Below are positions 17,748 through 63,895 of a DNA stretch of 64,000 nt, in pieces; within the stretch, counting starts at the first letter, position 1, and the number at the start of each line of letters is the position of its first letter. The notes under the pieces are model-generated. The model did no database searches. It was given only the letters and a program-made list of their open reading frames with translations, and was not told the origin of the DNA. Both the position numbers and the translations under genes were made by a program. The stretch is taken from sequence record NC_005260.1, one strand, 5' to 3'.

Positions 17748-17775
17748 AGTATACACGATGAAATAGCTATGTCAA
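17748..17775 (-). promoter_or_regulatory. Sigma70-type promoter
   Basis: TTGACA-16-TATACT upstream of the vs.1-like gene. Confidence 0.7.
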
Positions 17776-17805
17776 CACGTATACCCGTTTTTAGCTCATT
17801 AGCTC

Positions 17806-17967
17806 ATTAACTAATCAGCTCCAGAAATCGAACATCGTAAGATTGCGAGCGTAGCGAGCTAACTTATTGATTTCATTGAAGAAGACAAAATAGATTCTCA
17901 TTAAAGATCTATAAGACATTTTATTTTGTCTTTTCTACTCTAGCGGCTACGCCGCAGTCTATCGACA
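17806..17967. repeat. Dispersed structured repeat, copy 1
   Basis: Roughly 85% identical by eye to 61437-61600. Confidence 0.9.
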
Positions 17968-18249
17968 TTCTTCTTCCTTGAGATCTTTTCGATAGTGGCA
18001 CAGAATTTCGTTTTGCTTCTGAACGTAATTGAACACCTTTTCTAGCCAGATTCGGTATCTCACTGAGTCATCATAACTCATTGCTACATACGGCTTACCG
18101 TCGTCCAGAATCACTCTCCACTCAGGTCGATACGTCTCTACTACTTCTGGACGCGGTGGATGATAAACAACAGGATTAATCTCTTGTTGATGTTGCGCAC
18201 ATCCACCCAACATCAGAGTTAGCCCAATCAAAGCATATTTCATTTGCAT
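17959..18249 (-). CDS. pseT.2: Outer-membrane spanin (Rz1-like lipoprotein)
   Basis: Lipobox LGGC, Pro-rich PPRP segment, overlaps i-spanin end. Confidence 0.85.
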   Translation of the reverse strand: MQMKYALIGLTLMLGGCAQHQQEINPVVYHPPRPEVVETYRPEWRVILDDGKPYVAMSYDDSVRYRIWLEKVFNYVQKQNEILCHYRKDLKEEECR

Positions 18250-26184: not shown

Positions 26185-26396
26185 TTCAGAGTCTCCAGTT
26201 TAACAGTAGAGAAGATTGCCAGCGCGCCTTGCCCACCAACATCACAATACACGATGTTTGCCAGCTTCATATACATCGGAAACTCTTCCGGGCTATAAAT
26301 CACGTATTCGTCATAACGATTTGCCAACATATAGTTGTCATATTGCTCGATGTTGTCAAACAGAGTGTAACCGATTTTGATCATAAGATCGTGCAT
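26181..26396 (-). CDS. Hypothetical protein
   Basis: Start re-called at 26396 behind the promoter cassette. Confidence 0.65.
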   Translation of the reverse strand: MHDLMIKIGYTLFDNIEQYDNYMLANRYDEYVIYSPEEFPMYMKLANIVYCDVGGQGALAIFSTVKLETLK

Positions 26397-26497
26397 GATA
26401 ATTTCCTCAGTGTTTCGTTTCGATGTGGCTATAATAACAGGACTAGATTTTGATGCAAGCACTTTCTGGAAAATAAAAATCCCGCCGGAGCGGGATT
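26394..26497 (-). promoter_or_regulatory. Terminator + early promoter + RBS cassette
   Basis: Stem-loop, A-tract, TTGCAT-16-TATTAT, leader CATCGAAACGAAACACTGAGGAA..ATG. Confidence 0.85.
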
Positions 26498-30632: not shown

Positions 30633-30722
30633 GATGTATTCCTCAGAGTTTTGTTGTGAATCGCGTCTCGCGTTTCGATGTAGCTATAATAACAGGACTG
30701 AATTACCGTGCAAGCACTTTTT
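30630..30722 (-). promoter_or_regulatory. Early promoter cassette
   Basis: TTGCAC-16-TATTAT, leader CATCGAAACG...CTGAGGAATACATCATG. Confidence 0.85.
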
Positions 30723-30729
30723 AAATTTT

Positions 30730-31291: not shown

Positions 31292-31621
31292 TTAGCCTAC
31301 ACGGATGATGTCGATACGCAGGATACCATCACAAACATCAGCACAAACACGGATGTCATTCTTACCAACTCGCAGAGTCATACCAGCTTGTTGACCTTCT
31401 ACCATGTCGTTGAACTTGATTTCTTCGTTGTTCAGACACAGATTAGCTTTTTCAGAGAAAGCGAACTCGCCTTTCTTGAGAGCTTTCTTTACCAGAGTCT
31501 TGACAGAAGCACAACCTTTGCCGGTGCGGATTGCAGTCTCGCGGCCGTTGTGTTCAAAACGTTCACAAGCACTCATTCCGAAGTAAGTCAGTTTGTAACC
31601 GGTTGGGCCGTACATGTTCAT
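31292..31621 (-). CDS. Hypothetical protein
   Basis: Start re-called at 31621 behind the cassette. Confidence 0.7.
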   Translation of the reverse strand: MNMYGPTGYKLTYFGMSACERFEHNGRETAIRTGKGCASVKTLVKKALKKGEFAFSEKANLCLNNEEIKFNDMVEGQQAGMTLRVGKNDIRVCADVCDGILRIDIIRVG

Positions 31622-31718
31622 GATGTTTTCCTCAGTGTTTCGTTTCGATGTGGTCATAATAACAGAACTGGATTATCGTACAAGCTTTTTCTAAAAAAAA
31701 TCCACCCGAAGGTGGATT
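31619..31718 (-). promoter_or_regulatory. Terminator + early promoter + RBS cassette
   Basis: AATCCACC-TTCG-GGTGGATTTTTT, TTGTAC-16-TATTAT, leader CATCGAAACGAAACACTGAGGAAAACATCATG. Confidence 0.85.
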
Positions 31719-31722
31719 CTTA

Positions 31723-31956
31723 TTAGTAGTGACCAAGCTCATTAGCTCTTGCTTTGATTTGTTCGTCGGTAAGAGCTTGTCGATTTTTGATGGTTTCGTC
31801 ATATTCGAACACACCATCGGGAGAAATCAACACGTAATCGCTCGTTCCCGTCTCCGGATTTCGGGTCATTGCTAACCCGAGTGGATGTAAAACTTGGTCA
31901 TTGATACGCTTGATAAGTCCCAGAGAGGACATATCGTTCCAATCTATCTTTTTCAT
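31723..31956 (-). CDS. Hypothetical protein
   Basis: IDWNDMSSLGLIKRINDQVLHPLGLAM, a conserved-looking phage ORF. Confidence 0.75.
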   Translation of the reverse strand: MKKIDWNDMSSLGLIKRINDQVLHPLGLAMTRNPETGTSDYVLISPDGVFEYDETIKNRQALTDEQIKARANELGHY

Positions 31957-36826: not shown

Positions 36827-36850
36827 AAAAAAGGCACCCGAAGGTGCCTT
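36827..36850 (-). terminator. Terminator after gene 32
   Basis: AAGGCACC-TTCG-GGTGCCTTTTTT. Confidence 0.9.
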
Positions 36851-36855
36851 AGTTT

Positions 36856-37764
36856 TTAGATTTCGTTCAGCAGATCATCCAGATCGGTGTCTACAGTACC
36901 AGCGGAGCCGGTGTTGAACGGAACATCGTCATCTTCTTTCTCAGGCTTGGAAGCCGGAGTATTTTCAAACTGTTCCATCTGTTTTTCGAAGTCATCAGCA
37001 GCGCGAGCGTTAGAACGCTTCTCGGCACCCATCACACGATTGAACACAGTGGTCAGATCTTCCATAGACTTGAACTTGTCTTTGGCAATCAGATCCATGA
37101 TATCGTGCATTTGTTCGAACAACTGGGCTTGATAAGCTTCGTCTTCGATGTTTGCAATCTGGGATTGCTTGCCGAAAACAGAGTCATCATAGTTGTTGTT
37201 GCCGCCAACTTTCTTAATCTTGATAGTGAAGTTTTTACCTTCAAACGGGCAAGTTACGTCGCACGGTTCTTCGCCCAGATCGGTGTTAACATCGACCTCA
37301 GCTTGAATCTTGTCCATGATTTTCTTACCGAAACGGAACTTGAACACTTTGCCTTCGTTATCGGGATTAGCCGGGTCTTTGATTACCAGGATGTTTGCCC
37401 AGAACGCGGTCTTACGAGTGACACCGGAAGCGTACATTGCTTTCTTGTCGGCTTCAACGTTGTAATCCCAGTTTTGTTCTTTGATCCACTGGCAAGCAGG
37501 GCAGTTATCGTAATCACCGTGAGTGCTGGAGCAATTCTCGATGTACCATTTGCCGTTGCGCTGGAAGCCGTGATTTACGAGCTTAACGAAAGTGGTAGCA
37601 TTATCACCCTTAGCAGGCAGGAAGCGAATAACAGCAGCACCGTTACCATCTTTACCTTGGGTCAGTTTCCACTCGGTGGCATCAGATTCAAAACCTTTCT
37701 TAGCAGAGAAAGCAGCCAGTTGTTGTTGCAGTTGGGACGGGTCTTTGCGCTTGAAAATAGACAT
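36856..37764 (-). CDS. 32: gp32 single-stranded DNA-binding protein
   Basis: AVIRFLP, HGF...GKWYIENCSSTHGDYDNCPAC, acidic tail LDDLLNEI. Confidence 0.97.
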   Translation of the reverse strand: MSIFKRKDPSQLQQQLAAFSAKKGFESDATEWKLTQGKDGNGAAVIRFLPAKGDNATTFVKLVNHGFQRNGKWYIENCSSTHGDYDNCPACQWIKEQNWDYNVEADKKAMYASGVTRKTAFWANILVIKDPANPDNEGKVFKFRFGKKIMDKIQAEVDVNTDLGEEPCDVTCPFEGKNFTIKIKKVGGNNNYDDSVFGKQSQIANIEDEAYQAQLFEQMHDIMDLIAKDKFKSMEDLTTVFNRVMGAEKRSNARAADDFEKQMEQFENTPASKPEKEDDDVPFNTGSAGTVDTDLDDLLNEI

Positions 37765-39980: not shown

Positions 39981-40019
39981 GTGTTTCCTTTGATTCCAAT
40001 AAATATATAATTTGGGCTA

Positions 40020-40050
40020 TATTTAGTATAGCTTAAAACCTAGCTAAATA
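40020..40050. promoter_or_regulatory. Divergent pair of CTAAATA late promoters
   Basis: CTAAATA on minus strand 40020-40026 (toward rnh) and on plus strand 40044-40050 (toward 34). Confidence 0.7.
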
Positions 40051-40075
40051 ATAGCATAACTAGAGAGGTAACGCA

Positions 40076-47820: not shown

Positions 47821-47845
47821 AATGAAACTAACATGAGGATTAGAA

Positions 47846-50800
47846 ATGGCAGATCTTAAATTAGGGTCTCAGATTGGAGGAAATCTAATCTGGCACCAAG
47901 GAATTCTGGAATTAAATCCTGTTGACGATAAGCTGTTTTATCGTGATCAAGAAATAATGACTACCAGAGGATATCAGACTATGCTTGGTTCAATCAAGTT
48001 TGGTACTTCTAATGATGTCTATGACATCGAAAGTATGAGCGACGGCCCGGGTGGGGTTAAGCGTTATTTGCGTAAAATGCGCTCCGGTGCAGCTTCTACT
48101 ATTTGGCATGAAACTATTAATGATCGTCTATATACGATTTCAACGGGTATAACCGATGTTGCTCCTCAGTTTACGCTGAATAACGGAGACAGTGCGACGT
48201 TTCAATATCCGGTTTTAACTAACAGCCCACAATCCGGTTTAGCAAACTCATTTACCCGTAGAGATTATGTGGTAGCAGAAGATGCGAAGAAAGTTAATAA
48301 AGCTGGAGACGGAATGACCGGTAACTTGGATTTTCATAATGATAATCAAGGCATCAGAGTTAAATTTCCGGGTGGATCAGTAGCGAATAATACCGGAGTT
48401 TTCGGTGGAACAGGTGACGCCGCAGCAAAGGACAAAACCAATATTCAAATCAAATCTTGGTATGGTGTTGGATTTAGTCCAAGTGTAACAACTGCAACAA
48501 GTAAAGTCGTTGCAGATGGAGAGAACAGTATTTGGTTTGATCTCAGAAACGGTAAAATGACAACGGTAGGACGTTTATTCGTTGATACCGATAAAGAGGT
48601 ATATAGTCCAGTCAATAAGCCAACTCCCGGTGATATAGACGCTTATACAAAGAAAGAAGTTGACGAAAAAAGCTGGATTAGAGTCAAAGATGAACGAGCC
48701 GCAATGATTGCGCCGAATGCATTGGCAAATAAAACTGTTGCCGCATATTTCACTAATCAGAGCGATGTTTCGTCTGGCTGGGTATCTGGATTGACTGTAA
48801 ACGGTTGGGATACAAACTACGCCGCATGGTCATTGTTTGCTGGATCAAGATCTGATGCCGACGAAAATAAACTATGGTTTAAGCACGGACGTTCTACTTG
48901 GCTGCCTAGCTCACGCATTTATCACGAACAAGATAAGCCAACAAATGATGAACTAAACTTGGTATCGCGCGCCGGTGATATTATGACTGGTATTCTTGAT
49001 ATGAAAGTGCCTGATAGTATGGGTCATGGCAAATATAGTATCAAACTGAATAACGGCTCAATTGGTGGCATTAATCAGCTAGTGTTTAATGACCCGTCTG
49101 ATACTTTCTCGGAAGGTATTCTTTTCCCGAAAACAGGAAAGAACGATCAGGGAACGACAAGCGCGGATTATGATACTCTGTGGGCACTCGACGGCGTTTT
49201 GAAATTCAATGGTCAAGCAGCTTATGGCGAATGGAATAAGCCAAACGCAGATGACACGCAATCATTCCCGGATGTTAGAACAAAACTAGCAGTTGATTTG
49301 GATACAGTTTTAACAATTGGTGCTTATTTCCAAGATGCAAACACAAACGCGACTGTAGCATTCCATTATCCAATGCAATCAGCCGGATCTCTATTTGTAA
49401 CTCGTTCGGCTTATGGTGTTCAACAAGAGTATACAACTTTCGGCGGACGTAAATTCCAACGCGGTAGAACGAGCACGGGTGTATGGGGACCATGGACTGA
49501 GTTTTATTCTGACGCTGCACCAACTCGTTATTTGAAGACGACAGGTGATACCGTTACTGGCACGCTGAAATCAACAGCGAATATCGTAATCGAAAGTTCT
49601 TATGACGGAATGTTGACATTGAATTCTACCGATGACGGTCCGAATTATATTACATTCGCTCGCAGCGGTGATAATAGATTCTTCATTCGTCAGGCAACAA
49701 CGGGCGATATCGCAACAGATAGACTTGAATTTTTGAGTGGTGTTAAAAATACAGAAGGAGCTTATCTGACTCCACTATGGGTCGATAGCACTGGTGTTTA
49801 TTCCAATCTACCACAAAAGGATGCAAGTAACGCATTAACTCGTAAAGACTATGTAGATACCAAAGTTGGTACTGCGGTACAGAGCGTTACCGCGACCGGT
49901 GCTGTTAAGAGCACTGGCGGAATTAACCCAGTAATCAGTTTGATCAACGCGACAACTACTGCCGACGGTGCCATGAGCGCAGCCGATAAAGCTAAGTTGA
50001 ATGGACTACCTGCTGCCGCAGTCAACAAGACTGGCGATAGTATGACTGGTAATCTGACATTCACCAATAACAGCGAGTTGGTATGGAATAGAAATAGTGA
50101 TTGGGCTAAGATTGGTTTCAAGAACGATTCGGATTCCGATGTGGATGCTTATATGTGGTTTGAAGCAGGAGACAACGGAAACGAATATTTCAAATTCAGA
50201 AGTCGAATGACCGGCACAACAACACCGGTTGAACTTGTTAATATCAAGAAAGAAAACACAACTTTCATGCATGACGTTGTATTGAAGGCGAGAGAATCTA
50301 ACGAATTAACATTGACCAATGATCCAACTGCTTATACCAATAATACAGGAACAACTCGTATGATTGGTGGTGTTTATTCTCAATGGTATACCGATGCGCT
50401 GACGTTTGGACATTTCAGAGGACCATCCACTACTTCTGCTGGATTTAAAGTTAAACTGAATGACAAGGATATATTAGCAGTTGCACCTGATAGAACACTC
50501 ACAACCGGAGCCGTGATTGGTGATAGTTATGTTGCTGTCTCTAAAGCAGGTAAACTTCTAGCATTGGAAGTTGATACCACGACTAAGATTCCTTATATTA
50601 GCGTCGATGCAACTTATCAGGCGATTCGATTTGAGGATGATAAGTCAATCACTTTGCCAGCGGGTCCTCTGAGTGTTTCTGGTAATATCAGAGCAACTGG
50701 GTCCGGAGATGTTTTTGCCAAAGAGAGTGTGAACGTTACCGGTCAGATTGTTTATTTTGCCGACAAAGCTACTGGTAAGACTGCTGGTGAAACTGGTATT

Positions 50801-51956: not shown

Positions 51957-52394
51957 GTAGCATTACCTTTCTGGCTTTCAACTGCAAACGCAGAATTGCG
52001 AGCTAACGGTTGGGCTAGTAACATGAGAACACAAGCTGGATTACCGGTTGCTGGTTTCATGAGTCAGTTGGTAAATAAAACAGCGATTAGTCTGATTGCC
52101 GCACCAAGTCGAACTAGCTCTATGCCTGTTTATTTCTCCTACTCAGGAGGAAAAGTTATTATGGAAGTTCCAACGTATAACTTGAAACAAGAAATCATAC
52201 TTGGTATGCCTTACGTTAATATTACAATGTCTGGACCAATACAAGCGCAGGGTTATAATGGCGGATGGCAGCGAATGGATGCGGGCATGATAAAAATGGT
52301 AAAAACATTTCAAGCAACAACTGAGTTTGTTATTACGTTTTCGAGTTCGCCGGACGGAACAACATCTAGACATCAATTTACATTTAAAAACTAA
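51954..52394 (+). CDS. 38: gp38-like fibre-tip adhesin
   Basis: LPFWLSTA...GWAS......AGLPVAGFMSQL resembles the N-terminal attachment domain of T2/T6-type gp38; follows an S74-bearing fibre. Confidence 0.65.
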   Translation: MVALPFWLSTANAELRANGWASNMRTQAGLPVAGFMSQLVNKTAISLIAAPSRTSSMPVYFSYSGGKVIMEVPTYNLKQEIILGMPYVNITMSGPIQAQGYNGGWQRMDAGMIKMVKTFQATTEFVITFSSSPDGTTSRHQFTFKN

Positions 52395-52415
52395 GCCACC
52401 TTCGGGTGGCTTTTT
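52393..52415 (+). terminator. Terminator
   Basis: AAGCCACC-TTCG-GGTGGCTTTTT. Confidence 0.9.
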
Positions 52416-52423
52416 CATTTTCA

Positions 52424-52430: not shown

Positions 52431-52456
52431 ACGATATAAACTGAGAGGAGTCTATA

Positions 52457-55400
52457 ATGGCAGATCTTAAATTAGGATCACAAATCGGAGGTAATCTGAT
52501 TTGGCACCAAGGCATTCTTGAGCTAAACCCTCTTGATGATAGCCTGTTTTATAAAGAATTCGATATGATCACCTCTAAAGGGGGTCAAACTATTAATGGC
52601 GGTATTTCTCTAAAAGGAGATATCAACTCAACTGGTAAATTTATCGGAGTTGGTAATGATGTTGGCTGGGGACAAGCTCCACACGCCGCATTTAACATGG
52701 ACAAAGATAATACATCCGGTGCTCACTGGCTTATTGCAAGCCGCAAATCAGACGGTAGTCCACGTGCTGGTATTCAAGTGCTGACAAGTGATATCGGCGA
52801 AACTCGTATTTACACAAACAAGAATGCGAACTATGTTGGATTCCGTGACGGCCAAGTGTATATCACAGCAACAACTCCTTCCGTTGCATCACATGCTGCT
52901 CGCAAAGACTACGTGGACAAAGAAGTTGATAGAGCTATGCAGTTCGCTGAAACAACTACTGACAAACTTACCACAGACTTGGCAACAGCAAACACAAAGA
53001 TCGACACATTAGACGCGCAGAATGTTAAGTTGACTGGAGATCAAACAATTAGCGGAATCAAGCGATTCAACGCTCATATTTTTGTTCCGACTGCTGATCC
53101 AACTTTAGATACACAGCTCACACATAAGGCATACGTCGATAAGAAAGTCGGTACCGCTGTTCAGGGAATCGCTGTGACTGCACCATTGACTACCACCGGC
53201 GGTGTTAACCCAACGCTGGCAATCACGGCTGCCACACGTACTGCCGCAGGTAGTATGAGTGCTGCGGATAAAGTTAAGCTAGACGATCTTCCTGCCGACG
53301 CACTGAGTCGTTCTGGTGGCAATATGAAGAACGGTGGATATATCAACTTAGAAGGTGTTGGTGGTATTCAGTCTCTTTATAACGGGAAAACTTATTCCGT
53401 TTTGAGAGATCATAATAACGGCAACGTTACATTAAGTGCCGCTAGTGGTGATTTGTATCTTGGATATCAAACTACCGCCGAAGTATATACAACCAAGAAC
53501 GTTATTCTTCATCAAACTATGAAATGGAATTCAGGAACTGGACGTGTTCTTGTTGATACCGATGGATTTATTCCGTGGGCAAGTATTAAAGATAAAGTCG
53601 GATTAGAAGGTAAGACTAAGCAAATTACGGGTCCTATCAATTTTGATGAATATGAGAGTACCGGTTTTTATAACTTGTATACAGCAAGAGCAACTGGATC
53701 AGTTAATCCACCACCATTCGATTACGGAACAATGCTTGTTCTTGGATCGGATAGAGATACTAGAACTTTTGTAACTCAAATCGCAACTGATAGAACTCAA
53801 GGATCGACTTATATCCGTACTAGAAATGATGGTGCGTTTGCTTGGACTCCGTGGGTAAAACAGATTGACGAACGTGGCGGTACTCTGAAAGATTTGACAG
53901 TTACCGAACAAGTCCAAATGAAAAAAGGATATGATGCTGATCTGAGTGGTATTATTCACAAATCATTTGAACACATTGGTAACACCGGTGATATGAAACC
54001 CATTTTGATTCTGTTGGCAAAACGTAGTTCTACTACAGCAATCGAAAGAAATGGCTTTATGGGACGGATTCATTTCAACCGTGGCGCAACGACATCGAAT
54101 CTTCAAGGCGATTATATCGATCTGGTAGCTTATTCTGGATATACCGAACAGTTCTATCGAATCAATTATATCAGTGGCGCAAAGATGGCTGGCACTAAGC
54201 TAGTTTATCATACACACACAGACGGAATTGAATATATCGCGTTGTATCGTTCGGCTAATAGTGCGTCCAACGTTGTAATCGATGGATTGTATTGGAACAC
54301 CGCACCGATTCTTATTGCTGATGCTACTGGTAGAGCAATGACTGATTTGGTAACTCGTCAATCATTCTATACCGATTATAATAAGCCGACTAACGAAGAT
54401 TTGGATTTAGTATCTCGCGCTGGCGATGAAATGACTGGAACATTAAGATCTGCCAAAATCAAAAATGCCATCATGGTAAACGATAAAGGAAGTATTAGTT
54501 TCCAAGATGGAGCAAGCACTAGATTCCATTTGGCATCCGAAGGCAATTCGCTTACGCTGAAACATGGAAACGACGGACAAAATGCGCTCGTTACATATTT
54601 GGGAGATGGCTCAATTACTTCTGTTGGACCGGTTACCGCGTCTGCATTCAGATCTAGTGGTGATTATGGGTTTGTTCGTTCAACTAATAACACCCAAGGT
54701 ATGTTCGTTGGAGCTGACGGTAGAACTATTATCGGCGGCGGTGTTAATGGCGTCGTTCATATTCGTCCGCAGGGAATTGGCACAACAACAGTTGAAACCA
54801 CGATCAACAACGACGGTACTATTACTCTAGGTAAACAAGGAACTGCTGCTGGACATTTAATTAATAAGGCTTATGTTGACGCAGTTGATGCCAAGAACGT
54901 AGCGAAAGCCGGTGATACTATGACTGGTGATTTGATTAACACAAAAAGCGTTCGCGCTCCCGTTGTATTGTCTGCCGTTGGAGATAGAAAGTTAGCACTG
55001 GAAATAAGTTCGGCAGCTGATAATCTTCCTTATATAAGTGTTGATTTTGCATATCGCGCTCTTGAGTTCAACGATAATAAATCAGTCACTGCGGTTCACG
55101 GATTTGAGGTGAACGGAAGAAACTCAACATCAAACTTTATTGTTCGTTCTACTGGATTTGTTGGTGGTTGGGCTCGTGGATTAGCTGGGCTTTCCGGGGT
55201 GGATACGATATCAACACAGAAAGCTGGAATTGGTTTCTCTGGTACAGGAGACTCAATCGCTCAAGTTTATATGGGTATGGGTTCTGCTCCTTGGGAAGCA
55301 GATAAAGGCATTCAAATTAACGCAAGTAACCAAATGTCATTTAAAAATGGACAAGACGGTGCTGCTATATTTGATGCGGGAGCGAGTGCTATGTTTAGAA

Positions 55401-61359: not shown

Positions 61360-61388
61360 TTCATTTACCTTTTGTTAAGAAGTGATAC

Positions 61389-61417
61389 CAGTATCGCATA
61401 GTTGGATGATAGTGTCA
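61389..61417 (-). promoter_or_regulatory. Sigma70-type promoter for ndd
   Basis: TTGACA-17-GATACT. Confidence 0.6.
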
Positions 61418-61436
61418 ATAGATAATCAAATTGATT

Positions 61437-61600
61437 ATTAACTAACCGGCTCCAGAAATTGATGATCGCAAGATTGCGAACGTAGTGAGCTAACTCATTG
61501 ATTACCTTAAGGAAGACAAAATAGATTCTCATTAAAGATCTATAAGAGATTTTATTTTGTCTTTCTCAATTAACTAGCGGCTACGCCGCAGTCTTCGACA
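61437..61600. repeat. Dispersed structured repeat, copy 2
   Basis: Near-identical to 17806-17967, same orientation. Confidence 0.9.
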
Positions 61601-61689
61601 ATCTACTTGGAAATGATTTGGAGCGATCCCATATGATAGCTATAACATCGTATTGCTATATCACACAGAATCGCTCCAACGCTTTCCTA

Positions 61690-62458: not shown

Positions 62459-62555
62459 TTCTTATACCTCTTGTTGGTGTGAACTTAGTATACTGGATTG
62501 GATTTAGATATCAAGTGATTTTGGAAAATAAAAAAGCCACCCGAAGGTGGCTTTT
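62458..62555 (-). promoter_or_regulatory. Terminator + early promoter + RBS cassette
   Basis: AAAAGCCACC-TTCG-GGTGGCTTTTTT, TTGATA-16-TATACT, AAGAGG RBS. Confidence 0.85.
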
Positions 62556-62560
62556 AGTGA

Positions 62561-63895
62561 TTAGTTCTTGGTACCAATCAGGGTTTTAACTTGCGCTTCC
62601 GACAGTTCGCGAACTACGAACATCTTGCAGGTACGCATTTTTGCAGAGTTGTAATCGGCTGGGATGGATACAATGTCAGTAGGACTAACAGTACATTCCA
62701 GAATCTTACCGCTGCCACCGTGGAACTGAGGCAGGTAGCTCTTGCTACACAGGTGCAGACCGCGAGAACAGGTTGCGGAGCTCTCGTCGCACTTAGAGCG
62801 ATCCATCTTGACTTCGGTACCGACTTTGTACAGTACAGTGCCAGAATGGAAGTCTTTGAAGTCATTACGAACACGACGGTAAGCAACAACATCACCTTTA
62901 TCGTTCACAACGATGTCTTTGGCTTCCAGGAACTTGAACAGTTCACCAACAACACGCTTGTTCGGGTTAGCCAGCAGTTTCTCAAGGAAACGTACCCACT
63001 TTTCGAACGGCTTGCCTTCGTGCATAGATTGGATGATACGCTCAACAACAGAGTTACCAACTTCCATGCCTTTGAAATACACAGTATCGTTTTTGATTTC
63101 GATATTGGTACCGGCATAAGAGCTAACGCCCTTAGCAACGTTGATCAGCCCCAGAGCTTTCAGAACATCACCGGCGATACACAGATCAAGCGCCTTGCGG
63201 AAGCTTTCGTGAGTGCTATCGGCAGTGAAAGTCTTGCCGTCTGCCATGATATTGATGAACTTCGGAGAAGCGAACCACTTGAGTTCTTTCGGAGCTTCTA
63301 CTTTCGGCTCAACTTTGGCAGCAGGAGACCCCGGACGGCGAGCTTTTACACCAGCACGTTTCAGAACTTCGCCAACAGTGCTTTCAGAGCAACCAACCAG
63401 CGAGGCAACAGTCTTTTGAGACTTGTATTCTCCGGTTGAATAGAGTTCAACGATTTTGGCGTCTCGCTCGTCTGCTCGCTTGTCGGTTTCACGAAATCGA
63501 GCGCCCAGATGTTCTTCTTTCTTCTCGACTGGCGCTTTCGGAGCAACCGGAGCGACTTTTGCAACAGGCTTTTGAGCAACAACCGGTTTCTGCTTTTCGG
63601 AACGAATCGCTTCAATGATCTTACGTGCTTCGTGCTCTTTGATGCCCAGTTGCTTAGACAGAGCCAGACGACCCAGTTTGCCTTCAACGATTTGAGTACG
63701 CATTGCTTCGGTAACGCCACCGGACTGACGCTTTGCAGCCAGTTCAGCTTCGGCTTTAACGAGTTCGATCATTTTACGCGCTTCGGATTCTTTGATACCC
63801 AGTTCGCGAGACAGTACGCCACGACCCAGAGTGCCAGCCAGAATACGAGTTTTTTGTTGTTCAGTCAGTTTAGCCATTTTTACAGTTTCCTTCAT
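62561..63895 (-). CDS. rIIB: RIIB protein
   Basis: LFKFLEAKDI.....G.VVAY..V..D..D.HSG...CSRGLH.CS..Y; N-terminal HTH repeats; upstream of ndd/52 as in T4. Confidence 0.9.
   Translation of the reverse strand: MKETVKMAKLTEQQKTRILAGTLGRGVLSRELGIKESEARKMIELVKAEAELAAKRQSGGVTEAMRTQIVEGKLGRLALSKQLGIKEHEARKIIEAIRSEKQKPVVAQKPVAKVAPVAPKAPVEKKEEHLGARFRETDKRADERDAKIVELYSTGEYKSQKTVASLVGCSESTVGEVLKRAGVKARRPGSPAAKVEPKVEAPKELKWFASPKFINIMADGKTFTADSTHESFRKALDLCIAGDVLKALGLINVAKGVSSYAGTNIEIKNDTVYFKGMEVGNSVVERIIQSMHEGKPFEKWVRFLEKLLANPNKRVVGELFKFLEAKDIVVNDKGDVVAYRRVRNDFKDFHSGTVLYKVGTEVKMDRSKCDESSATCSRGLHLCSKSYLPQFHGGSGKILECTVSPTDIVSIPADYNSAKMRTCKMFVVRELSEAQVKTLIGTKN

Follow-up and report, generated by a model that had tools for sequence, protein, structure and literature searches.

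The 64,000-nucleotide stretch of DNA analyzed here (the window) corresponds to bases 169235-233234 of Aeromonas phage Aeh1 (NC_005260.1), window base 1 being genome base 169235. It includes two copies, named A and B, of a non-coding element, a region 100% identical to the Aeh1 record, which belong to a family of eight copies occupying seven loci of the phage genome. The element is a composite palindrome in which inverted GC-rich hairpin arms clamp an AT-rich stem-loop core, with a match to the consensus of the integration host factor (IHF) site beside the core. The family probably has a function at the DNA level and a role on the scale of the whole genome, and we favor, at a probability of about 0.35, the reading that each copy is an origin-like module for unwinding and priming that would work independently of its orientation.

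The family can be considered a discrete, conserved and easily mutated module, found in at least six sequenced Aeromonas phages and, in each, at seven loci with even spacing. T4 has served for decades as a model of replication. It is still not clear what makes a site an origin in phages of this type (PMC3016281). If the elements are origins they would provide the first consensus origin sequence in this group of phages, and the definition of the origin, its spacing, and the way in which late transcription is linked to replication would become directly testable. If they are not, they would represent an unusual case of repeats of the REP or Correia kind fixed at syntenic, equidistant sites in the genome of a virulent phage. 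The family also corrects two gene calls that are likely spurious.

Copies, loci and relatives

A preliminary description made from the window sequence had reported a two-copy duplication 43.6 kb apart. Both copies are found where it placed them (BLASTN of 17806-17975 against 61437-61608 gives 87.3% identity over 173 columns, E = 2e-47, and a gapless repeat finder, in which the pair is family D2, gives 128 nt at 89% identity), but they are two of the eight copies at seven loci in Aeh1. The copies in the whole genome were located by covariance-model searches using a sequence model, R1, built from copies A and B, which score 178.5 and 180.3 bits, respectively. The intergenic location assigned to the pair does not strictly hold for copy A, as its outer hairpin contains the final codons and the stop of pseT.2 (ORF 17959-18249). 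The gp54/gp26 locus (119921-120257) has a head-to-tail pair in Aeh1, Ah1, and avDM12-TAAL, and a single copy in PX29, phiAS5, and Ahp1_CNU-2021.

BLAST matches to the Aeh1-type element are confined to 13 phage records (Aeh1, Ah1, avDM12-TAAL, phiAS5, phiWae14, PX29, and AsFcp_1/2/4). Conservation in relatives had been set beforehand as a test that could refute the proposal of an element, and each of the seven Aeh1 loci also has an element in Ah1, avDM12-TAAL, PX29, and phiAS5, these five genomes of three genera being free of additional sites. No new insertion site was found in the whole avDM12-TAAL genome; a BLAST count of 11 places in it was discarded because it reflected reverse-strand matches and a duplicate at the assembly ends. 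The avDM12-TAAL record begins and ends in the same element copy (L043:130-268 and L047:32846-32984), and therefore the assembly was probably broken at the repeat. This phage is labelled Chrysonvirus; its homolog of the Aeh1 protein Aeh1p224 (93%) and several of its elements are nearest to those of Aeh1 and Ah1, and its '49k' copy resembles that of phiAS5, which suggests a mosaic genome.

A search for the core pattern in 185,579 bacterial and archaeal species genomes (one per species) returned only chance matches in unrelated AT-rich metagenome-assembled genomes, and the same pattern gave one weak chance match in metagenomes. A 16-mer of the outgroup element described below gave 44 unrelated single matches in viral contigs. 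No earlier description of the family was found in the searchable literature, the coverage of which leaves out subscription journals.

The outgroup is Ahp1_CNU-2021 (218 kb), a genome without Aeh1-type sequence that has a homologous, divergent element in the spacer between genes 14 and 15. Its inverted arms include GCGTAGCGA, it has a CCGACC-GTA-GGTCGG hairpin, the ends of its core loop, CTTATAGA ... GAGATTCTATT, match those of Aeh1, and the pair that forms its core stem, GGGGGA / TCTCCCCC, is GC-rich and unrelated. Ahp1_CNU-2021 carries seven copies, five of which are at loci common with Aeh1 (upstream of the large p141-like gene, '49k', pseT.2/vs.1, gene 14/15, and gp54/gp26); the other two are at a primase-proximal and a tail-fiber locus, in place of the gene 47 and ndd loci. 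Thus, the number of loci is conserved and their positions can change.

The gaps between loci are 27, 40, 30, 29, 38, 44, and 25 kb in Aeh1 and 38, 29, 25, 31, 39, 28, and 28 kb in Ahp1_CNU-2021, which gives a mean density of about one locus per 33 kb and a coefficient of variation of the gaps of 0.15-0.28. The probability that seven random points on a circle show a coefficient of variation equal to or lower than the observed one is 3e-4 for Aeh1, 7e-4 to 2e-3 for the four syntenic relatives, and 6e-5 for Ahp1_CNU-2021, in which the two relocated loci constitute an independent test and even spacing is retained.

The early genes that flank the elements in Aeh1 are nearly all on the minus strand and the elements are found in both orientations with respect to transcription, four of the seven loci being antisense to the flanking genes. 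Furthermore, three loci show the element inverted in place. One is ndd, where Aeh1 and PX29 differ in the direction of the element although the genes on either side are orthologous and have kept their strand; the second is '49k', where Aeh1 differs in the same way from phiAS5/avDM12 between flanking proteins with 84-88% identity; the third is gene 14/15. These inversions indicate a function independent of the orientation to the neighbor genes and speak against a strand-specific RNA. The minus-strand sigma-70-type promoter that had been noticed after each copy in the window is indeed present (Table 1). Such promoters are separated from the conserved unit by 25-60 nt and do not enter the alignment, the vicinity of some copies has a late promoter or no promoter at all, and the loci include the late regions gp54/gp26 and gene 14/15. 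A late-type promoter, CTAAATA(C/A), adjoins the outer arm hairpin and reads outward at three loci, into gene 15, the p141-like gene, and gp26 or a tail-fiber gene, both in the Aeh1 group and in the outgroup.

Structure of the element

The unit, 120-190 bp in length, is described along the minus strand of the window. Its left arm includes a first hairpin, h1 (GTC..GAC, GTGC..GCAC or GTGT..ACAC), followed by TGCG, a second hairpin, h2 (GCGGC-GTA-GCCGC or the compensated GCGAC..GTCGC), and GCTAR. After a spacer of 0-45 nt comes the core, an 11-bp stem (AAGAsAArATA / TAyyTTsTCTT) around an AT-rich loop of 29 nt in which many bases are invariant (CTTATAnnnCTTnnATGAnnAT). A variable stretch of 12 nt and the sequence TCAA-N4-TTAGC lead to the right arm, which takes one of two forms, the left arm in inverted copy or the shorter TnCGCA-GTCGC-TGGC-GCGAC, and the unit ends with a one-sided 3' extension consisting of TTTCTGGAG and an ATG/TTG-containing motif. 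In variant II, where the right arm is the inverted left arm, the terminal inverted repeats are about 25-30 bp long. The sequence features quoted in the preliminary description are present: its near-invariant core differs between copies A and B by a single base (C in one, G in the other), and its GCGGC-TAC-GCCGC hairpin (h2 in Table 1) and its GCGA(G/A)CGTAG(C/T)GAGC motif (GCGAGCGTAGCGAGC) are found in the copies.

The core stem is structural, since it is 95.8% paired, has two compensatory pairs in PX29 with intermediate mismatches in phiAS5, and has an unrelated GC-rich stem in its place in Ahp1_CNU-2021. An inner stem inside the core loop is weakly supported, and a long-range pairing of the arms (ACTGCG/CGCAGT) was rejected because it reflects conservation of sequence and not covariation. 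The h1 stems differ within one genome (GTC/GAC, GTGC/GCAC, GTGT/ACAC) yet stay complementary, with a mean length of 3.83 bp compared to 2.43 +/- 0.14 in shuffles; the right-arm hairpin has a mean stem of 4.6 compared to 3.12 +/- 0.17. The h1 loop is of the G..A type closed by C-G in 24 of 30 hairpins. Mini-hairpin motifs (GCGNAGC, GCGNNAGC or CCGNAGG) are present in 36 of the 37 copies, usually two to four per about 140 bp, over a background of 67 per 64 kb, and they are always located on opposite strands in the left and right arms. As a consequence each strand bears stable hairpins 5' of the core.

The IHF site, as predicted by sequence, matches the full consensus (WATCAANNNNTTR) in 22 of 30 copies and keeps CAA-N4-TTA in all 30. 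According to the computed stability of 40-, 55-, and 70-bp duplexes the cores of copies A and B rank second and third least stable in the window (z about 3.5-3.7), and the cores of avDM12 rank first, third, and seventh in the first 50 kb of that genome.

The origin-like reading and its alternatives

The preliminary description had left the choice between a cis-acting DNA element and a structured non-coding RNA. The former branch, notably in the form of a putative origin or primosome site, is the one that fits best because there are seven conserved, evenly spaced loci, the elements flip in place, the core is easily melted, and the mini-hairpins are on opposite strands. The latter is disfavored for reasons given with the RNA-level explanation below. 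An origin-like module could function as follows. The AT-rich core would open with the aid of negative supercoiling, of transcription through it, or of bending by an IHF-type protein. Each displaced strand would then fold its own arm into compact hairpins that resist single-strand-binding protein, and these hairpins would mark the start of outward synthesis for the phage helicase loader and primase, or for a transcript. With outward starts from hairpins on their own strand the site would work in either orientation. Several such sites on a circularly permuted genome would start early replication, as well as clamp loading for late promoters, everywhere at once. A fuller and more tentative version of this model is that the elements are the replication origins of the Aeh1-like phages, portable bidirectional modules with a melting core, priming hairpins on opposite strands and an IHF bend site, which selection may keep equidistant around the circularly permuted genome and at which clamp loading may switch on the adjacent late operons.

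Judged from sequence, the architecture of the element resembles that of RSF1010 oriV and the G4-type initiation sites, and the number and density of copies resemble those of T4 origins. In RSF1010, ssiA and ssiB are on opposite strands. As in RSF1010 oriV and the initiation sites of G4, St-1, and alpha3, the Aeh1 elements have compact hairpins with G..A loops, here on opposite strands flanking an AT-rich, easily melted segment. Unlike those systems, the family has neither iterons nor an identified initiator protein, is present in seven copies per genome, and belongs to a T4-type phage with its own gp41/gp59/gp61 primosome, where a priming role is a candidate. The mini-hairpin DNA motifs GCGNAGC/GCGNNAGC/CCGAAGG occur in phages G4, St-1, and alpha3 at primase-dependent initiation sites, and were reviewed by Kimoto and Hirao as unusually stable DNA hairpins that are also found in RSF1010 ssiA (CCGAAGG) and in N4 promoters (PMC13037366). 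Phage T4 has at least five origins (oriA, C, E, F, and G) in 169 kb, with a DNA-unwinding element needed at oriF and oriG and no motif common to the origins (PMC3016281). The density in the Aeh1-type phages and the outgroup is similar (seven loci per 218-233 kb), a computed unwinding element like that of oriF and oriG is present in the Aeh1-type cores, and, as is the case for T4 origins, several loci adjoin late-transcribed regions or transcription switch points (PMC3016281). On the other hand, T4 origins consist of a promoter and a downstream unwinding element and share no motif, whereas one conserved promoterless module is found at every Aeh1-type site.

Several observations weigh against the origin-like reading. 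No promoter is part of the repeat unit, whereas T4 oriF and oriG need one reading into the unwinding element; a middle-mode (MotA) promoter in that position was not found in the Aeh1-type unit and no TGCTT MotA box was seen in the element alignment, although read-through transcripts may still cross the element. The GC-rich core stem of Ahp1_CNU-2021 limits the easily melted part to the loop, and all seven copies in that genome face the downstream gene and carry an RNA-typical C(TTCG)G hairpin, which leaves room for a role at the RNA level. No comparable repeat was found in the 50 kb of phage 65 that were examined; the family is therefore restricted to a lineage and is not a general feature of T4-type phages. 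The spacing tests on the five syntenic genomes are mutually non-independent, and the covariation of the stems comes from few independent events. The IHF consensus has eight matches in the window for 5.3 expected and thus no overall enrichment. AT-rich promoter regions give a duplex instability similar to that of the cores, and the least stable duplex of the window, 39999-40067, is outside the family; it is a very AT-rich segment that includes the palindrome GCTATATTTAGTATAGC and the late-promoter-like CTAAATAATA.

An RNA-level intercistronic role is unlikely. The palindrome would act within polycistronic mRNA as a processing site for RNase III or RNase E, a 3'-end stabilizer, or a read-through attenuator insulating transcription units, much as bacterial REP/BIME and Correia elements work, and being palindromic it could do so in either orientation. 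All copies are indeed found at the boundaries of transcription units, in most cases a short way upstream of a promoter that faces outward, but only seven of the many unit boundaries have an element, and this role offers no rationale for an even spacing that survived the turnover of loci. Both strands fold far better than shuffles, with none of 200 shuffles matching either strand (z about -4.2 to -4.4); the window plus strand is favored by 3.2 kcal/mol on average, a difference that is not decisive. The hairpin stems covary, and the seven Ahp1_CNU-2021 copies are sense-oriented and would carry C(UUCG)G as RNA, but the loops are mostly of the G..A type with a pyrimidine in the third position, which is not GNRA and matches the DNA mini-hairpin motifs, and upon inversion the conserved long loop and the asymmetric tail become their own complement. 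Correia elements bind RNase III and IHF (PMC2649163). A strong terminator, separate from the element, adjoins it at the gene 47 locus. Rfam 15 had no match in the whole window at the gathering score, and at a permissive E-value the element gave weak chance matches to miRNA and snoRNA families (E = 0.04 to 7). A structured RNA is disfavored by this lack of Rfam matches together with the presence of copies in either orientation to the flanking transcription and their inversion at the same locus between relatives.

The elements could also be selfish palindromic repeats, related in kind to MITEs (miniature transposable elements with inverted repeats), Correia elements or REPINs, or solo remnants of a homing-endonuclease cassette, that spread in an ancestor and were maintained by gene conversion with no function for the phage; we regard this as quite improbable. 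Like the Correia elements (CREE/NEMIS) and the BIME/RIP/REPIN repeats of E. coli, which are palindromic intergenic repeats of about 100-160 bp with inverted GC-rich ends, an IHF site in the conserved core, either orientation, and a location near promoters (PMC2649163), the units of about 120-190 bp have inverted terminal arms, lie in both orientations, and form a tandem doublet at gp54/gp26; in addition, the arms are modular and swappable, and lineage-specific changes are common to the copies within a genome, as in concerted evolution. Those repeats, however, are bacterial, present in tens to hundreds of copies, and polymorphic or mobile, whereas the Aeh1 family is phage-borne, limited to seven loci, syntenic across genera, and evenly spaced, which is unexpected for selfish insertions. 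The mobility expected of MITE or Correia elements is not seen: there is no presence/absence polymorphism among close relatives, in which the seven loci are filled in five genomes of three genera, and turnover is observed only with respect to the distant Ahp1_CNU-2021, where two loci differ. With no empty site among the close relatives, target-site duplications are unreadable. REP, BIME, and REPIN families, GC-rich palindromes of host type that number hundreds of copies and come with a RAYT transposase, are also unlike a set of seven to eight copies per genome whose core is absent from bacterial genomes and metagenomes other than as chance matches. No transposase is evident, and no HUH-type (RAYT) gene was noticed in the annotation. 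Two deeply diverged lineages have seven loci each and keep the invariant positions of the loop. A nuclease-less relative of homing endonucleases, Aeh1p224, does abut one copy.

Equally improbable is a different role at the DNA level, in which the elements would be preferred by the phage type II topoisomerase or serve to anchor domains, in the manner of BIMEs with gyrase and IHF, or would be palindromic targets of gp46/47 or endonuclease VII whose cutting seeds recombination-dependent replication. The even spacing, the independence of orientation, the hairpin and cruciform potential, and the IHF consensus would suit such roles, and the phage encodes gp46/47, gp49, and topoisomerase subunits. 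The asymmetric core and a spacer of 75-120 bp make extrusion of the whole element as a cruciform unlikely, and such roles would be compatible with the origin model, with which they overlap.

A network of operators, in which Aeh1p224 (p224) as a CapR-like DNA-binding protein would bind the conserved asymmetric core at all loci, is doubtful to a still greater degree. This 201-amino acid protein is encoded by an opposite-strand gene inserted between genes 14 and 15 (genome positions 148189-148794), and is a nuclease-less homing-endonuclease relative with three CapR-type zinc modules and the CapR homology domain PF21817, a domain described previously (PMC8096241). The spacing of its first module, CxxC-x22-CxC, is near that described for CapR, and distant relatives have three to four tandem CapR domains. 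Its start codon lies within the 3' extension of the gene 14/15 copy (148.8 kb) in all three genera, and close homologs are found in exactly the 13 records with the Aeh1-type element, a co-occurrence that is confounded by shared ancestry. All Aeh1-type phages have the protein, with 60-93% identity, and Ahp1_CNU-2021, phage 65, and CC2 lack it; genes 14 and 15 are adjacent in the latter two. Since Ahp1_CNU-2021 has the seven-copy family, including the gene 14/15 locus, without p224, this protein was downgraded as the likely binding protein, and it looks like a homing-endonuclease relic inserted beside an element. A search of the p224 sequence against PDB found no match, and its structure model is poor (pLDDT 50). 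The first copy of the gp54/gp26 pair ends with ATGAAC-TAA, which corresponds to the first two codons of p224 followed by a stop.

A gene for a small RNA or a small protein is very improbable: short minus-strand ORFs do exist as had been noted (34 amino acids at 17815-17919, annotated as Aeh1p285, and 55 amino acids at 61365-61532), GenBank ORFs lie on two copies, and the fold is stable, but the start ATG is replaced by ATC in most copies, the frame and length of the ORFs vary among them in agreement with the absence of protein-level constraint noticed earlier, neither promoter nor terminator is part of the unit, the orientation varies, and Rfam has no match. The small-ORF reading was rejected on the unconserved start codon. 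Aeh1p285 and Aeh1p059 (60 amino acids, L002:49489-49671) are probably spurious gene calls, as both are wholly on element copies and their ORFs are not conserved in the other copies.

Feature coordinates and other repeats

Table 1. Location of the element copies in Aeh1, of the parts of copies A and B, and of adjacent promoters. Numbering refers to the window, to the genome, or to the fragment named; the orientation of the genome copies is given in the sense of the window minus strand.
Feature	Numbering	Position	Strand	Remarks
Aeh1 copy	genome	22410-22487	+	
Aeh1 copy	genome	49512-49628	-	'49k' locus
Aeh1 copy	genome	89949-90070	+	
Aeh1 copy, first of tandem pair	genome	119921-120112	+	gp54/gp26 locus
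Aeh1 copy, second of tandem pair	genome	120114-120257	+	gp54/gp26 locus
Aeh1 copy	genome	148790-148944	-	gene 14/15 locus, 148.8 kb
Aeh1 copy A	genome	187035-187218	-	
Aeh1 copy B	genome	230666-230851	-	
Copy A, whole	window	17801..17984	-	between pseT.2 and vs.1; R1 match, alignment
Copy A, left arm	window	17940..17966	-	overlaps pseT.2 stop codon; TGCG between h1 and h2; h2 then GCTAG
Copy A, h1	window	17957-17966	-	GTC-GATA-GAC
Copy A, h2	window	17943-17955	-	GCGGC-GTA-GCCGC; mini-hairpin GCGTAGC, minus strand, 17946-17952
Copy A, core stem-loop	window	17882..17932	-	11-bp stem AAGACAAAATA / TATTTTGTCTT, 29-nt AT-rich loop
Copy A, IHF consensus match	window	17860..17872	-	WATCAANNNNTTR; here AATCAATAAGTTA
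Copy A, right arm	window	17834..17863	-	inverted left-arm copy; inner end GTTAGC
Copy A, right-arm hairpin	window	17834-17843		ATC-TTAC-GAT
Copy A, right-arm mini-hairpin motif	window	17849-17855	+	GCGTAGC
Copy A, 3' extension	window	17801..17827	-	TTTCTGGAG, about 10 nt, ATG/TTG-containing motif; common to most copies
Early-type promoter of vs.1	window	17748..17775	-	TTGACA-16-TATACT; outside the repeat
Copy B, whole	window	61432..61617	-	upstream of ndd-like gene; R1 match
Copy B, left arm	window	61574..61599	-	
Copy B, h1	window	61591-61599	-	GTC-GAA-GAC
Copy B, h2	window	61577-61589	-	GCGGC-GTA-GCCGC; GCGTAGC, minus strand, 61580-61586
Copy B, core stem-loop	window	61513..61563	-	11-bp stem as in copy A; loop differs by one base
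Copy B, IHF consensus match	window	61491..61503	-	AATCAATGAGTTA
Copy B, right arm	window	61466..61494	-	degenerate CGTAGTG replaces GCGTAGC; inner end GTTAGC
Copy B, right-arm hairpin	window	61466-61479		TCGCA-ATCT-TGCGA
Copy B, 3' extension	window	61432..61458	-	TTTCTGGAG and following bases
Early-type promoter of ndd-like gene	window	61390..61418	-	TTGACA-17-GATACT; outside the repeat
Outward late-type promoter	L005	1940-1965		into gene 15
Outward late-type promoter	L003	40925-40950		
Outward late-type promoter	L048	1140-1170		

Repeated intergenic stem-loop motifs of about 100 bp have been found before in T4-type genomes. The PeSL cassettes, which consist of a sigma-70 consensus promoter and a terminator stem-loop, have the orientation of the gene downstream and form clusters in hyperplastic regions (PMC2839356); they are known in RB49, phi1, T4/PST, and KVP40/nt-1 and are potential sites of homologous exchange (PMC2839356, PMC4122927). 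The Aeh1 element is similar to PeSLs as a repeated intergenic motif with a stem-loop but its copies are few and evenly spread, and membership in that group was rejected because the promoter is outside the unit, the orientation is variable, and late-gene loci are included.

Three other repeats are present in the window. A separate three-copy repeat of about 83 nt with a promoter-like TATAAT (26391-26473, 30646-30728, and 31616-31698; repeat-finder family D1) looks like a promoter cassette of the PeSL type. Near-identical intrinsic terminators with the structure AAAAAAGCCACC-CGAA-GGTGGCTTTT are located at 31695-31730, 36827-36862, and 62530-62565, and in inverted orientation at 52382-52419; outside the window, one terminator of this kind adjoins the element copy at gene 47. 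A 138-nt direct repeat with 75% identity, found at 47845-47982 and 52456-52593, 4.6 kb apart (family D3), may be paralogous coding sequence.

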